64,000 nucleotides of DNA, taken from positions 1-64,000 of the IMG/VR virus record IMGVR_UViG_3300046665_000548. The stretch is one strand, 5' to 3'. Below the pieces are notes generated by a model. The model saw nothing but the letters and a program-made list of their open reading frames with translations, had not been told where the DNA came from and made no database searches. Position 1 is the stretch's first letter; each line of letters begins with the position of its first letter. A program made the translations under genes and the position numbers. Positions 1,150 through 53,407 of the stretch are shown here, piece after piece.

Positions 1150-1193
1150 AACAATACACGAAGACAGTAACCAACTAAACCAAGGATATTCCA

Positions 1194-1625
1194 ATGTCGC
1201 TGTAGCTGCACCATCACATTGATCTAACGGCTCTCACCACTGAGGCCGAGAACGACCCCTATCGCTTGTACGCCATTGTGCGCGGCGATCTGGAAATGTC
1301 GCCGGGCAAGCTCGCGGCTCAAGCCGGACATGCCTATTGCGACGCGCTCCATGCAGCGCTCACTCGCGATCCCTCTATCCAACAGAAGTATTTCAGGGCG
1401 AATAGCTCGGGGACCAAGGTCACCCTAGTCGCGTCCTCCGAGTTCCGACTCCTTCGCGCATATCAAGACGCGCAGAAGGCCGGATTGCCGTGCGCTCTGA
1501 TCATCGATCAGCATCACGTGCACCCTCCACACTTCGACGGCTCACCCATCATCACGGCGCTCGGGATCGGTCCTGCGCGGCGAGCGGATGTGCACGCCAT
1601 CACGAAGCGGTTCTCCACTCTTTAA
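1194..1625 (+). CDS. pth2: Peptidyl-tRNA hydrolase, Pth2 family, with in-frame UAG at codon 4
   Basis: YAIVRGDLEMSPGKLAAQAGHA, KVTL and TALGIGP motifs; SD AAGGA precedes ATG 1194, in frame with ORF 1266-1625 through TAG 1203-1205. Confidence 0.85.
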
Positions 1626-4090: not shown

Positions 4091-4178
4091 GGGGATGTAG
4101 CTCAGCGGTAGAGCGCCGGTCTCTAAAACCGGGGCGGCCAAAAGCCCGGCGCGGGTTCGAAGCCCGCCATTCCCACCA
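4091..4178 (+). tRNA. Amber suppressor tRNA (anticodon CUA), long variable arm, G4:U69, A73
   Basis: GGGGATG/CATTCCC-A-CCA; anticodon arm CCGGT-CTCTAAA-ACCGG; T arm GCGGG-TTCGAAG-CCCGC. Confidence 0.9.
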
Positions 4179-4179
4179 A

Positions 4180-4256
4180 GCTCCCTTAGCTCAGTTGGTT
4201 AGAGCACTGGACTCTAAATCCGGGGGTCGTCGGTTCGAGCCCGACAGGGAGCGCCA
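4180..4256 (+). tRNA. Amber suppressor tRNA (anticodon CUA), short variable arm, G73
   Basis: GCTCCCT/AGGGAGC-G-CCA; anticodon arm CTGGA-CTCTAAA-TCCGG; T arm GTCGG-TTCGAGC-CCGAC. Confidence 0.9.
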
Positions 4257-4260
4257 GTTA

Positions 4261-4292
4261 GAAAGCCGGGGGAAACCCCGGCTTTCTTTTTC
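4261..4292 (+). terminator. Intrinsic terminator after tRNA pair
   Basis: GAAAGCCGGGG-GAAA-CCCCGGCTTTC plus T tract. Confidence 0.85.
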
Positions 4293-4296
4293 TTCT

Positions 4297-4776
4297 TTAC
4301 ATTACTTCCGCGACGACGCGGCCGACACCACGACCGGTCAGACCGATAGCGCTGGCTGCGCCCTTGGACAGGTCGAGCACGCGACCTTTGATGAATGGGC
4401 CGCGATCATTGACCGTGACGACGACGCTGCGGTCACCGTGGGTGACACGTAGCTTGGTGCCGAACGGCAGCGAACGGTGCGCAGCGGTCATGGCGTTCTG
4501 ATTGAAGCGAGCGCCCGAAGCGGTCTTGTTACCGGCTTCATTGCCGTAATAGGACGCGACGCCAGAAAAGGTGCGTCCGCTTCCAGTCGTCACGGGCGCG
4601 GCGGTTGCGCGAAACGCGTGGTCGAAAAACGACAGGATGGATGGAGTGGTATCTGGCGTCGGCTTGGCGACGCGCTGAGCATGATGCCGATGATGGTGAG
4701 ATTTGGCCGAGGCTGTATCAGCAATCGTGCCGGTCATTAGAAGAGCGAGAGTAGCAACAGTGATAATGGGTTTCAC
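4297..4776 (-). CDS. rlpA: RlpA-family (DPBB) lytic transglycosylase with signal peptide
   Basis: GVASYYG, TASG, TAAHRSLPFGT, VNDRGPF, LDLSKGAA; GTG 4776 after AAGGA. Confidence 0.9.
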   Translation of the reverse strand: MKPIITVATLALLMTGTIADTASAKSHHHRHHAQRVAKPTPDTTPSILSFFDHAFRATAAPVTTGSGRTFSGVASYYGNEAGNKTASGARFNQNAMTAAHRSLPFGTKLRVTHGDRSVVVTVNDRGPFIKGRVLDLSKGAASAIGLTGRGVGRVVAEVM

Positions 4777-7376: not shown

Positions 7377-7844
7377 ATGCAACTTTTTGTCGATTCTGAT
7401 GGGGTCTTTTACGACTTCACCCAACATGTAATTGATCTGTTCGGTATTCATCCCGATCAGTTCTCTGGCGGTCCGAACGCGATGTGGGAAACCATCAACG
7501 CGAACGACACCTTTTGGCAGACCATGCCTTTGATGCCAGACGCTCTCCTGCTTTGGGAGGCCATCAAACCGGCTCGCCCAATCGTGCTCACTGGGTGTCA
7601 TCGCGACAACTATGACAGCATCGTTACGCACAAGGAAAAGCGGTGGCTGGAGGATTTTAGTCAGTCCAGCATCATCACGTGCTTGTCCAAAAACAAGGCA
7701 ATGCACATGGAGAAGCCTGGAGACATCTTGGTGGACGATACCTATCGTATCATCAAGAAGTGGGAGGCTGCTGGTGGTCGCGGTGTTCTGTTCAAGAACG
7801 CGTCCCAGGCTATCGCTGACTTGAAGACCCTCGGGGTTATCTGA
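7377..7844 (+). CDS. HAD-family 5'(3')-deoxyribonucleotidase
   Basis: FVDSDGVFYDF, LTG, ILVDD; TATGAT 5 nt upstream of ATG. Confidence 0.85.
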   Translation: MQLFVDSDGVFYDFTQHVIDLFGIHPDQFSGGPNAMWETINANDTFWQTMPLMPDALLLWEAIKPARPIVLTGCHRDNYDSIVTHKEKRWLEDFSQSSIITCLSKNKAMHMEKPGDILVDDTYRIIKKWEAAGGRGVLFKNASQAIADLKTLGVI

Positions 7845-11500: not shown

Positions 11501-13711
11501 GTGTCTCCAATGGATTTCATGATTCCTATGTCATCTTCTTATCTCATTCGCGGTGCGGATTATCTTGCCAACTATCCTGATTTCCAACTAGTTGGGCGAG
11601 ACGCCGATCTACGAAAGCTTTCATCAATTCTGATCCGCAAAGAAGCCAATTCGACGCTTCTTGTAGGTCCGGAAGGCGTTGGCACGACCGCTCTTTGTCT
11701 CGGCCTTCAGGCCAGCAAGAGCGATCCGGATGCCCCCTTCGACATCGTTAGCAAGCGTCTGCACTGGCTCGACACCGATGGACTTTTTTCATCCGGCGAC
11801 GGCCAGAAAATCAATGAGTTTTTCCAGAAGGCGATGGACGAACTGTCTCAAACGCCTGACTCGATTCTGATCATCGAAGATACGCGAGATTTCATTGAGG
11901 GCTCTCGCAAGTCCGGCAACGATCACTTCATCAACGCCATCACGATGGCGGTGAAGGCTCAAAAGACCCAGGTCATTCTAGAGGTCCGTGACGGCGATCT
12001 CGATCAAGTTCTTAAGTGGCATAGTGACCTTCGCGAGTCCTATACGCTGCTCGATCTCGAAGAGCCGGTTGGCGACGATTTGAAGAGGATTGTCGAAGGC
12101 GTATCCGCATCACTGACGAAGCATCACGGCATCCCGGTCTCGGCCGACGCCCTTCAGGCTGCTATCGATCTGACCAGCAAATATCGCACCGACGATGGTG
12201 TGCTTCCCGTTGCGCAGCCGAAGCGCTCGCTGGCGCTGCTTGACCGTGCGCTATCCACCTATCGATTGGAAGCCCACAAAAATCCACCGGGACTCTCTGC
12301 GCTCCAGCAGATGCTTGCGCGCGCCGAGTCGGCAGAAGCCACTCAGAGCGTGCAGGGCGAAATCGACGCGTTGCTCAAGGAATGGAACGCTCGTCAGACC
12401 GAGATCAAGCGGCTGTACGGAGAGCAGCGCAAGGGCGAGATCAACATCATCGAGTTGAAGGACGAACTCGTTGAAACCCAGAAGAAAGAAGAGGCTCGAC
12501 GCGCTCAGCCAAAAGAAGATGGCAAGAGCGAACAGGAGCAACAGGCCCCTCGACGCATCGGTCTTTTCACAAAAGCTGCGGCGATGGGAGGCTTCGACTC
12601 GGAAGAGGTGGCAAGTCTCAAAACTCGCATTGGCCAGTTTGAAACCGAACTGGAAAGCAACCGCGATGCATTCCGTAAGCTGACCGAAGAGATCAACAAA
12701 GACCTTCAACTCAGCCGCCCCATTGTGGTGGCGGAGTTCAGCCGTATTTCTGGTATCTCGGCCAACAAGCTTGACGAGGACGAGAGGGCAATTCTGCGCA
12801 ATCTGGACGCTACGTTGCGCACAGACGTGTTCGGTCAGGACGAGTCCATTCTTAAGGTTTCAAACGCTATCAAGGTGGCTCGCGTCGGCCGCCGCAATCG
12901 CAGCAAGCCACAGGCTTCATTCATGTTCCTCGGGCCATCCGGGGTCGGCAAGACCCAGGTAGCCAAGTCTATCGCCAAGGCGCTCAAGGGCGACGAAAAA
13001 GCCATGCTGCGCCTCGACATGTCGGAGTACATGGAAAAGCACGCAGTCGCTAAACTGATCGGCGCTCCTCCGGGCTACGAGGGTTTCGAAGCTGGCGGTA
13101 TTCTGACCAATGCCATGCGCAAGGACCGAAATCGGATCATCCTTTTCGATGAGATCGAGAAGGCGCATCCGGACGTGTTCAACATCCTGCTCCAGGTGCT
13201 TGATGACGGTCGTCTGACTGACAACATTGGCCGCGTTGTGTCATTCGATGAAGCAATCATCATCTGCACGACCAACACTGGTCAGCCACATTTCCTCGAT
13301 CAGAGCTTGAGCTTCGAGGAAGCCGAGCGACGGGCTCTGAAGGACTTGGACGAGACCTACCGGGCCGAGTTCCTGAACCGGTTTAACGGTCGGCAGAACA
13401 TCCTGTGCTTCAATCGCCTTGGTCTCGATTCCATCGAGAAGATCGTTCAGCGTGAACTTCGCGATCTCGATGCCGCATACACGGCGGAAGGTGTTTCGTC
13501 GGAAATCAGCAAGGAAGCAATCAAGAGCTTCTGCGCCGATCATTACGATCCGCGCGTGGGTGCTCGTGGCTTGCCCGGCTACATCCAGTCGAACCTTGAA
13601 CCGATCATCGTGGATCGAATTCTCGATCTTCCGAACAGCCACGGCGTGTTCAAGATCGATTACAATAAGGCGAACCGCATCTTTGACGTGCAATTCGAGG
13701 AGGCGGCATAA
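11501..13711 (+). CDS. clpB: ClpB-like AAA+ chaperone without N domain, NBD1 degenerate
   Basis: NBD2 FLGPSGVGKT, RLDMSEYMEKH, LIGAPPGYEG, LFDEIEKAHPDV, GAR; NBD1 GPEGVGTT; start uncertain. Confidence 0.9.
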   Translation: MSPMDFMIPMSSSYLIRGADYLANYPDFQLVGRDADLRKLSSILIRKEANSTLLVGPEGVGTTALCLGLQASKSDPDAPFDIVSKRLHWLDTDGLFSSGDGQKINEFFQKAMDELSQTPDSILIIEDTRDFIEGSRKSGNDHFINAITMAVKAQKTQVILEVRDGDLDQVLKWHSDLRESYTLLDLEEPVGDDLKRIVEGVSASLTKHHGIPVSADALQAAIDLTSKYRTDDGVLPVAQPKRSLALLDRALSTYRLEAHKNPPGLSALQQMLARAESAEATQSVQGEIDALLKEWNARQTEIKRLYGEQRKGEINIIELKDELVETQKKEEARRAQPKEDGKSEQEQQAPRRIGLFTKAAAMGGFDSEEVASLKTRIGQFETELESNRDAFRKLTEEINKDLQLSRPIVVAEFSRISGISANKLDEDERAILRNLDATLRTDVFGQDESILKVSNAIKVARVGRRNRSKPQASFMFLGPSGVGKTQVAKSIAKALKGDEKAMLRLDMSEYMEKHAVAKLIGAPPGYEGFEAGGILTNAMRKDRNRIILFDEIEKAHPDVFNILLQVLDDGRLTDNIGRVVSFDEAIIICTTNTGQPHFLDQSLSFEEAERRALKDLDETYRAEFLNRFNGRQNILCFNRLGLDSIEKIVQRELRDLDAAYTAEGVSSEISKEAIKSFCADHYDPRVGARGLPGYIQSNLEPIIVDRILDLPNSHGVFKIDYNKANRIFDVQFEEAA

Positions 13712-52304: not shown

Positions 52305-52544
52305 TTAACCCGGCCAGGGGTGAGACAGCGTAACATTAATGCTTTCCATGATATCGCCACCACACGCAGTTGCGCGCAGGTTGTCTATCGTGCATGAATA
52401 CACACCAGGATCGTTGTTGCTCTCGATAGCATCGGCAAACGCCCGTAGTTTGGCCGCTATAATTTGGTGAGCTTTTTCTCGACCTAACTCATCACAGAGC
52501 AGACGGTAGGTGTACTTTTTACCCTTCGGGGCTACGTCGCTCAT
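52305..52544 (-). CDS. Hypothetical protein
   Basis: ATGA overlap with pth2 stop. Confidence 0.6.
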   Translation of the reverse strand: MSDVAPKGKKYTYRLLCDELGREKAHQIIAAKLRAFADAIESNNDPGVYSCTIDNLRATACGGDIMESINVTLSHPWPG

Positions 52545-52909
52545 AGGAGCCTCAAGCGTTTGAGAAAAGCCGGGAGTTCGTCGTGATAAGCCGGGCCGAA
52601 CGCGCACACAGTTGCTGTGTTCGGTTCGAGTTCTGAACGGCCAGCGTCATGGATAATATAGGTCGGTATCCCGGCCTGTCTTGCCTCTTCATGAACACGG
52701 CGCAACGCGGTCTCGCTGTCAGCCCGAACTGTTATCTTAGGGGTTGCATCTTCGAGATACTTCGAGAATATCTCAGGCTGCTGTTTCTGAGCCACAAGAT
52801 GCAAGTGTCCAAAAGCATGACCGGCCTGAGCACAAGCCTTGCCAATGCTCATACCGAGATCGGTACGCACGGCCAGCCACATCTTCAATTCACGTTTAGG
52901 CGTATCCAT
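52541..52909 (-). CDS. pth2: Second peptidyl-tRNA hydrolase, Pth2 family
   Basis: VRTDLGMSIGKACAQAGHA, KITV, DAGRSE, TVCAFGP. Confidence 0.92.
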   Translation of the reverse strand: MDTPKRELKMWLAVRTDLGMSIGKACAQAGHAFGHLHLVAQKQQPEIFSKYLEDATPKITVRADSETALRRVHEEARQAGIPTYIIHDAGRSELEPNTATVCAFGPAYHDELPAFLKRLRLL

Positions 52910-52915
52910 TTGATC

Positions 52916-53407
52916 CTACCATGGCCTTATAGCGATCTGATCCGTCGTCAGATTTTGAAGATCGTTGAAACGGATATCCCCCTCAGCCTGATTCTTGATG
53001 CGATAAAGCTCCATCATAGTCGAACCGTCCATATTACGGCGATCTCTCAGGCTAAGAGTTACAAAGAAATCGTCACTATCGATGACCGATGGCGAATTGT
53101 TTCTCTCGTCGCAAATCACATCAGAGCTATAGAGCAAACCCTGATTTGTGAAATTGACTAGAATTGTCTTGAAAAAACTAGCGACAAATGCTCGCTGAAA
53201 GGAGTCGTTGTGTGCGAACAGCAACCCGCCGTCTTCTGTGCGAAAGCGACTTGCCCACCAACTGACGCGATATGCCGTCAGCAGATTGACGTGCGCCCTC
53301 GTCCGAGGCGGAAGCAAGGGCGCGATCTCGACGTACTTACGCAGTTGCTCGGAAATATTGCGAGTCAGCCGGTCAGGATAATCTAAACCTGCAAACTGCA
53401 TTGCCAT
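52916..53407 (-). CDS. Stand-alone tail-sheath C-terminal-domain-like protein
   Basis: LFAHNDSFQR...VICDERNNSPSVID. Confidence 0.6.
   Translation of the reverse strand: MAMQFAGLDYPDRLTRNISEQLRKYVEIAPLLPPRTRAHVNLLTAYRVSWWASRFRTEDGGLLFAHNDSFQRAFVASFFKTILVNFTNQGLLYSSDVICDERNNSPSVIDSDDFFVTLSLRDRRNMDGSTMMELYRIKNQAEGDIRFNDLQNLTTDQIAIRPW

Follow-up and report, generated by a model that had tools for sequence, protein, structure and literature searches.

The peptidyl-tRNA hydrolase gene pth2, at positions 1194–1625 of the window (here, the first 64 kb of the 607,744-bp viral contig IMGVR_UViG_3300046665_000548), probably carries a programmed stop-codon gate that is under the control of the phage's own suppressor tRNA. 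The contig belongs to a jumbo phage that is distantly related to Agrobacterium phage Atu_ph07, the ClpB-like proteins of the two being 50% identical. The first 8 kb of the window matched no phage nucleotide record, and Atu_ph07 and the Sinorhizobium phage Phosso were found by a protein-level search. The elements of the gated gene are as follows:

1183–1187, plus strand: Shine–Dalgarno (SD) sequence AAGGA, 6 nt 5' of the ATG at 1194, read directly
1194–1202, plus strand: mini-ORF ATG TCG CTG (M-S-L), read directly and taken as the true start of pth2
1203–1205, plus strand: gate codon, an in-frame TAG with C as the next base, codon 4 of pth2, read directly
1206–1625, plus strand: PTH2 hydrolase body, 139 codons and a TAA (1623–1625), Pfam PF01981
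1266–1268, plus strand: TTG without an SD, the start chosen by gene callers, most likely a mere Leu codon

Because an in-frame TAA occupies positions 1176–1178, the ATG at 1194 is the first possible start. Direct reading bore out the preliminary description of this DNA, in which the SD AAGGA and ATG 1194 led into M-S-L-TAG in frame with the hydrolase. The frame is unchanged across the stop, with the ATG frame continuing into the body, and the +1 frame meets a TAA after 6 codons. No ATG, GTG, or TTG was present in the 20 codons read between TAG 1203–1205 and TTG 1266, and it is for want of an ordinary start after the TAG that gene callers begin at TTG 1266 and predict a product of 119 aa. The preliminary description had also noted that this TTG lacks an SD. 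We agree, and the conserved part of the protein begins 5' of it: the peptide E-A-E-N-D-P-Y-R, encoded upstream of TTG 1266, is kept at the protein level in homologs, and the homolog-conserved stretch E-x-E-x-D-P-Y-R-L-Y-A-I begins 12 codons after the window TAG, well before the TTG. In sequences from two public sequencing runs, which were weak matches that represent relatives only (most aligned pieces were <90% identical to the window), positions 1265–1266 were T and C, and TTG 1266 was replaced by the synonymous Leu codon CTG, indicating that it is not a conserved start. Judging from these comparisons, translation of pth2 begins upstream of TTG 1266. The promoter that had been placed at 1121–1149 was not confirmed: a consensus scan did not call it, and by our own reading its −10 hexamer fits at three of six positions.

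Within the 64-kb window, this is the sole occurrence of an SD and ATG followed by a short ORF, a TAG, and a long ORF without a nearby start. A looser early-stop pattern has a background of 3–6% of the other ORFs in related loci for each of the three stop codons. The RNA structure around the window gate was no different from that of shuffled sequences (z = −0.57).

The body of pth2 encodes a divergent predicted peptidyl-tRNA hydrolase. It matched the PTH2 family (PF01981) with E = 1e-21 and 77.4 bits, compared with a Pfam gathering cut-off of 23, and covered positions 3–114 of the 115 in the profile. The AlphaFold model of the body had a pLDDT of 89, and its best PDB matches were all Pth2 proteins, with E values down to 2e-10 and target-normalised TM-scores up to 0.93; the archaeal and eukaryotic (including human) entries 2zv3, 1wn2, 1q7s, and 1xty had target-normalised TM-scores of 0.86–0.93 against the model. 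K35 of the G-K-x-x-A-Q motif and D101 at the D-A-G-x-T loop position (numbered in the translation of 1206–1622) were invariant in 25 clade members and aligned to the same columns as the Lys and Asp of solved Pth2 proteins. The fold and the Lys/Asp positions are therefore those of archaeal and eukaryotic Pth2, from which the gated clade differs in an N-terminal extension with a D-P-Y-R motif and in a loop of the form D-Q-H-H-V-x-P-P-H-F-D-G-S-P instead of D-A-G-x-T. The homolog alignment thus agreed with the earlier statement that the catalytic loop is unusual. In the window, it reads IIDQHHVHPPHFDGSP; the canonical A-G-x-T after the Asp is absent, and Q-H-H-V-H-P-P-H-F-D-G-S-P stands there instead, with a 4-residue insertion.

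A second, canonical PTH2 gene is present in the window at 52541–52915 on the minus strand (D-A-G-R-S-E loop; Pfam 5e-31). Its own ATG lies two codons past the in-frame TAG that ends an upstream 163-aa ORF (52916–53407, minus strand), and amber suppression would join the two into a 289-residue protein. A scan for conservation of this TAG returned the window's own contig only.

Two genes for tRNAs with the anticodon CUA lie 2.9 kb downstream of pth2 in a plus-strand block that they share with it, which is closed by a hairpin directly 3' of the tRNAs:

4091–4178, plus strand: tRNA with the amber-suppressor anticodon CUA, a long variable arm, A73 as discriminator, and an encoded CCA (ARAGORN; Rfam tRNA, 64.2 bits)
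4180–4256, plus strand: second tRNA with CUA as its anticodon, of ordinary size, with G73 as discriminator and an encoded CCA (ARAGORN; Rfam, 68.7 bits)
4260–4297, plus strand: strong intrinsic-terminator-like hairpin and T run, with a 12-bp stem containing 8 G-C pairs and a T-rich tail

These tRNA genes, which the preliminary description had not spotted, are the decisive element of the locus. In the ARAGORN structures, both form a cloverleaf with CUA in a 7-nt anticodon loop. Among the fetched tRNAs, the nearest relative of the tRNA at 4091–4178 was a tRNA-Tyr(GUA) (72%). The nearest relatives of the tRNA at 4180–4256 were suppressors adjoining pth2, namely the UCA tRNA of L011 (81%) and the CUA tRNAs of L002, L022, and L024 (79%); its closest resemblance is to recoding tRNAs associated with pth2 in other phages, regardless of the anticodon of the latter.

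A further tRNA-like gene, which scored 50.7 bits against the Rfam tRNA model, is located at 1944–2020 on the plus strand. Its anticodon arm can be read as an 8-nt loop or as a 7-bp helix with a GGAA tetraloop cap and hence offers no normal anticodon, and the gene may encode a four-base decoder or a tRNA mimic that lacks an anticodon. The relative L001 shows the same oddity with a GAAA cap (7638–7710), likewise a short distance 3' of pth2. Other window genes encode a ClpB-like ATPase (11501–13711, plus strand) and an alanyl-tRNA-synthetase-like fragment (29017–29880, plus strand); together with both PTH2 genes and the four genes for tRNAs or tRNA-like RNAs, they constitute an unusually rich translation and proteostasis set.

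To compare the start of pth2 among relatives, homologous loci were collected from contigs of viral and metagenome origin and from the isolate genomes of Atu_ph07 and Phosso. In approximately 80 of the approximately 92 distinct jumbo-phage homologs, including those of the cultured phages Atu_ph07 and Phosso, a start, 1–12 codons, and a stop were found just 5' of the domain. The census of the approximately 92 distinct clade sequences was as follows:

Start, 1–12 codons, in-frame TAG: 43
Start, 1–12 codons, in-frame TGA: 4–5
Start, 1–12 codons, in-frame TAA: 5
Stop, then +1 frame: 33
Stop, then −1 frame (chance control): 2
No such feature: 3

When one labelling rule was applied to all genes, 74 of 93 clade genes had a gated start only, compared with 0 of 52 outgroup PTH2 genes, 44 of which had an ordinary SD and start. 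The distant phage PTH2 genes of XacN1, Xoo-sp13, phiM12, and phiCbK likewise had ordinary ATG starts and no gate; as pth2 of XacN1 starts normally, the amber suppressors of that phage are not explained by pth2. On this comparative evidence, the early stop is a conserved and clade-specific feature of these Pth2 genes. Nearly every gated homolog has an SD at the same distance from its mini-ORF ATG. The sequence ATG TCG CTG TAG recurs identically in L002–L004 and L093, and a synonymous MSL-TAG occurs in L006 and L019, the proteins of these six loci being 60–73% identical to the window Pth2. Across the clade, both the length (1–12 codons) and the sequence of the mini-ORF drift (ML, MT, MSL, MKEL, MNKQ, MKY, MIGEHF, and others), and the flanking codons diverge while the early stop stays. 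The gate reads M-K-Y-TAG in Phosso (L085), where a tRNA-CUA gene is located 4.5 kb upstream, and M-I-G-E-H-F-TGA in Atu_ph07 (L084).

That gene callers truncate pth2 might suggest a pseudogene or an assembly error at the TAG. This explanation has almost no probability left, given that the stop is kept in approximately 80 independent assemblies and two isolate genomes with diverging flanking codons, and that the domain has retained its invariant catalytic residues and has a confidently modelled fold. The preliminary description had called for the upstream regions of homologs to be compared, and the approximately 80 lineages with an early stop exclude a sequencing error or a unique mutation; they also support its claim that the TAG is part of the gene, with readthrough apparently needed for full-length Pth2.

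In both isolate genomes, pth2 is annotated from an internal Met, the M of D-L-E-M (Atu_ph07, record positions 198552–199001; Phosso, record positions 176491–176985), which leaves out the conserved N-terminal part and the gated start. In six homologs (L141, L150, L128, L151, L134, and L165), the PTH2 domain itself is interrupted by one more in-frame TAG, which follows D-D-P or a comparable sequence, and the phages concerned may use TAG more widely as a sense codon. In L008, L009, L011, L018, L020, and L021, phage tmRNA genes are found at most a few kb away from pth2, which suggests a gene neighborhood for ribosome rescue and tRNA recycling.

The type of gate corresponded to the anticodon of the nearby tRNA. 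Where a recoding-type tRNA was located within 6 kb, it fitted the gate in 33 of 33 cases, with 0 mismatched pairs; sign tests of this match were not significant, because the phylogenetically independent contrasts are few (2–3 for TAG versus TGA and 1–2 for in-frame versus +1). The cases were distributed as follows:

In-frame TAG gate with tRNA-CUA: 21 cases
In-frame TGA gate with tRNA-UCA: 4 cases
TAG-C, then +1 frame, with an ordinary-sized tRNA carrying GCUA in the anticodon loop: 8 cases

The GCUA in the anticodon loop is the four-base complement of UAGC. Gate and tRNA were found to have switched together between sister phages: TAG/CUA in Phosso corresponds to TGA/UCA in Atu_ph07, and TAG/CUA in L010 to TGA/UCA in L090. 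The match in Atu_ph07 is based on the statement of its authors that UCA is its only suppressor tRNA (PMC6102473). In L018 and L120, M-L-TAG-A is followed by the +1 frame, and the adjoining tRNA has an 8-nt anticodon loop containing UCUA. In approximately half of the gated loci, no matching tRNA was seen within 6 kb, and no UUA tRNA was seen beside the TAA gates. The strength of the argument, which is drawn from sequence, lies in the exact codon–anticodon fit and the absence of exceptions. The matching across phages lends indirect support to the decoding of UAG by the phage tRNA-CUA in vivo, and we infer that readthrough of the gate does occur.

These comparisons also bear on the possibility that M-S-L-stop is a separate leader, that the ribosome reinitiates at CTG 1206 or TTG 1266, and that the suppressor tRNAs are unrelated neighbors. 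The codon directly after the stop is GTG, a possible coupled start, in three TGA loci (L008, L011, and L090) and CTG, a near-cognate start, in the window, L006, L019, and L091; moreover, pth2 often sits among tRNA genes anyway. However, the post-stop codon in many lineages is a non-initiating one (GTT, CAC, GAT, GAA, ACT, or AAA), TTG 1266 is CTG in close relatives, and some lineages have a further TAG inside the domain. Stop type and tRNA anticodon also agree in 33 of 33 cases, and 33 lineages would need a +1 shift right after the stop, compared with two in the −1 control class. We consider reinitiation improbable.

The relatives in which the frame changes at the stop provide further information on the gate. 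In one sub-clade, the 5' end of the gene forms a +1 cassette consisting of an ATG, 1–8 codons, and TAG-C, after which the gene goes on in the +1 frame (e.g., L098, 5928–6011; L129, 5859–5942 and 8221–8304; L154, 5910–5993 and 7539–7622). A near-invariant nucleotide motif follows the stop and is succeeded at a fixed distance by a hairpin, for which at least eight different stem sequences were found. When the cassettes were folded singly, the hairpin beat shuffled sequences by more than one standard deviation (z < −1) in 18 of 24 cassettes. RNAalifold recovered an invariant 3-bp stem only, since the alignment does not bring the variable hairpin into register. The tRNA with GCUA in its loop was near the +1 gate in eight loci and immediately upstream of pth2 in the four examined. 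The +1 cassettes may represent natural four-base or +1 decoding.

The gate is also found on a second gene. In one sub-clade, an HD-like gene of approximately 195 aa lies between a few hundred bases and approximately 2 kb downstream of pth2 (e.g., L012, 7537–8127; L118, 6359–6961; L122, 6431–7031); its product has a Y-H-D-C-G-K-P motif and a Pfam HD score at the cut-off. In all 16 loci where this gene is gated, its gate is of the same type as that of pth2 on the same contig, and the nucleotides after the stop are shared too; in 13 other loci, it is ungated and has an ordinary ATG. No homolog of this gene was found in the window. As the HD-like gene shares the gate type of pth2, the gate behaves as a transferable cis cassette that responds to one trans factor.

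The preliminary description had suggested that the mini-ORF acts as a minigene similar to lambda bar: its drop-off product would be a Pth substrate, and the locus would sense the demand for Pth and feed back on readthrough. The layout of SD, ATG, one to three codons, and stop that is known from toxic minigenes is indeed that of the window mini-ORF, the gated product is a peptidyl-tRNA hydrolase, and phage tmRNA genes adjoin pth2 in several relatives. This feedback is nevertheless unlikely. No step connects low Pth activity to more readthrough, the length (1–12 codons) and sequence of the mini-ORF are not conserved, the HD-like gene of relatives carries the same gate, and the second PTH2 of the window (52541–52915) has its own ATG two codons past the upstream TAG and no mini-ORF gate. 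The gating of the HD-like gene and the free drift of the mini-ORF point instead to a general tRNA-dependent gate, not to a Pth-specific sensor.

The genome is not recoded as a whole, and TAG still ends ordinary genes. TAG is the terminator of 11 of the 73 well-scoring window ORFs, and the in-frame continuations past these stops are mostly short and poorly scoring; no other gene with an early TAG was found in the 64 kb. The GC content is approximately 52%. The situation is similar in Atu_ph07, where a strict scan of 199.7 kb (41% of 490 kb, 424 ORFs) identified pth2 as the sole in-frame gated gene (TGA), and whose authors count TGA as a terminator 267 times (PMC6102473). These observations make it very improbable that the code is reassigned, with TAG serving as a sense codon genome-wide or in the entire set of late genes, so that the TAG of pth2 would be one of many. 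Such a reassignment would be in keeping with the two CUA tRNAs encoded by the phage, with the second TAG inside pth2 in a few relatives, and with the existence of recoded phages that have suppressor tRNAs (bioRxiv 10.1101/2021.08.26.457843). A phage-encoded suppressor tRNA, as in code 15-type recoding, is present in the window, but in-frame TAG in a large share of genes was not found, pth2 being the only case in 64 kb.

Three pairs of window ORFs are joined in frame by a TAG. Both members of each pair start separately, and the domains are unrelated in those cases for which a Pfam family was identified, which also speaks against reassignment; readthrough at these pairs was rejected. An HTH/sigma-70 region 4-like ORF (28210–28998, plus strand) ends in a TAG in frame with the ORF at 29017–29880 (plus strand), a match to the class II alanyl-tRNA synthetase family (tRNA-synt_2c). 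The two would be fused by suppression, and the TAG between them is probably there by chance. A seemingly gated ORF at position 8036 of L002 was discarded as an ordinary gene with an internal-Met start, homologous to 2268–2840 of the window.

Under the reading that we prefer, a stop-codon gate operated by the phage tRNA, ribosomes would start at ATG 1194, make M-S-L, and meet UAG at codon 4, where the host release factor 1 and the phage tRNA-CUA would compete. If release factor 1 wins, only the tripeptide would be produced; if UAG is decoded by an amber suppressor (4091–4178 or 4180–4256), full-length Pth2 of 143 residues would result. Because Pth2 would be made only upon readthrough, its output would be tied to the amount of working phage suppressor tRNA. 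Such a gate would be least costly at the very start of the gene, where a failed attempt wastes no more than a tripeptide. The biological purpose of the gate is a matter of conjecture, and two candidates may be offered. The first is a feed-forward arrangement, in which an enzyme that cleans up peptidyl-tRNA is scaled to suppressor activity: suppressors would cause readthrough, stalled ribosomes, and dropped peptidyl-tRNA, and Pth2 would match the remedy to the burden. The tmRNA genes beside pth2 in several relatives fit the ribosome-rescue module that this implies. The second is a timer or interlock, which would hold the enzyme back until the set of phage tRNAs has been expressed.

A broader proposal, which we put forward tentatively and at slightly less than even odds as a whole, is that the gate is part of a small recoding regulon run by this group of jumbo phages, in which a dedicated tRNA and a transferable 5' cassette (SD, ATG, a few codons, and a stop) switch on tRNA-maintenance enzymes. 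As conceived jointly, these enzymes would be Pth2 and, in some phages, the HD-domain protein; the cassette and tRNA would exist in the matched flavors UAG/CUA, UGA/UCA, UAG-C with a GCUA loop, and UAG-A with an 8-nt UCUA loop; and the +1 flavor would be helped by the conserved downstream RNA element.

In full-text searches, no paper was found that connects pth2 with suppressor tRNAs. Publications on related phages mention suppressor and hydrolase separately and leave the suppressor targets open: the authors of XacN1 sought such targets and found none, and those of Atu_ph07 could point only to many TGA stops (PMC6102473). Many large standard-code phages carry suppressor tRNAs without known targets, and the pth2 gate is a conserved and specific candidate target. 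The two cultured phages represent both flavors, TGA/UCA in Atu_ph07 (Agrobacterium) and TAG/CUA in Phosso (Sinorhizobium). The logic that we offer is that of a phage tRNA serving as a translational switch for a translation-quality-control enzyme. If the regulon reading is true, the so far unexplained suppressor tRNAs of standard-code phages would gain their first conserved targets, and quadruplet-type decoding would have a natural example in which it is used for regulation. The +1 variants, if they represent natural four-base decoding with matched tRNAs, may be of use in recoding and genetic-code expansion work. Annotation currently truncates gated pth2 genes at an internal Met or Leu, and the correction concerns approximately 80 of the contigs examined.

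Several known systems resemble the pth2 gate in part. The bldA gene of Streptomyces encodes a tRNA-Leu(UAA) that serves the few genes with the rare TTA codon, without a competitor. Both systems use a dedicated tRNA as a trans-acting switch for very few genes marked by one special codon; however, bldA reads a rare sense codon, whereas the pth2 gate is a stop codon, at which the tRNA would compete with a release factor. The prfB gene for release factor 2 is autoregulated by a +1 frameshift at an early in-frame UGA. It shares with pth2 an early in-frame stop in a translation-factor gene with C as the next base, and the +1 sub-clade of relatives, in which stop-C is followed by the +1 frame, resembles it formally. 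In the window, by contrast, the frame is constant, the product does not recognize the stop, a matched tRNA is supplied in trans, and the gate has neither a CUU-type slippery codon nor an internal SD. The lambda bar and other toxic minigenes consist of an SD, an ATG, one to three codons, and a stop. These minigenes are free-standing, whereas the stop of the pth2 gate shares its frame with the enzyme gene that follows and is conserved together with that gene and with a matching suppressor.

The nearest comparison is with the recoded gut phages of codes 15 and 4, in which stop-codon recoding has been proposed to time late genes and 26–71% of genes, mostly structural and lysis genes, are recoded in genomes of low GC content (Borges et al., bioRxiv 10.1101/2021.08.26.457843). 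In both systems, the suppressor is encoded by the phage, in-frame stops would block translation until the suppressor is present, and TAG and TGA versions exist, with switching between close relatives. The recoded gut phages have shed the stop codon as a terminator, whereas the window phage, at approximately 52% GC, still ends genes with TAG. Furthermore, the gate described here is a single stop within the first few codons of one enzyme family, joined in some relatives by the HD-like gene; it occurs in frame-shifted flavors as well, and at least two cultured phages carry it.
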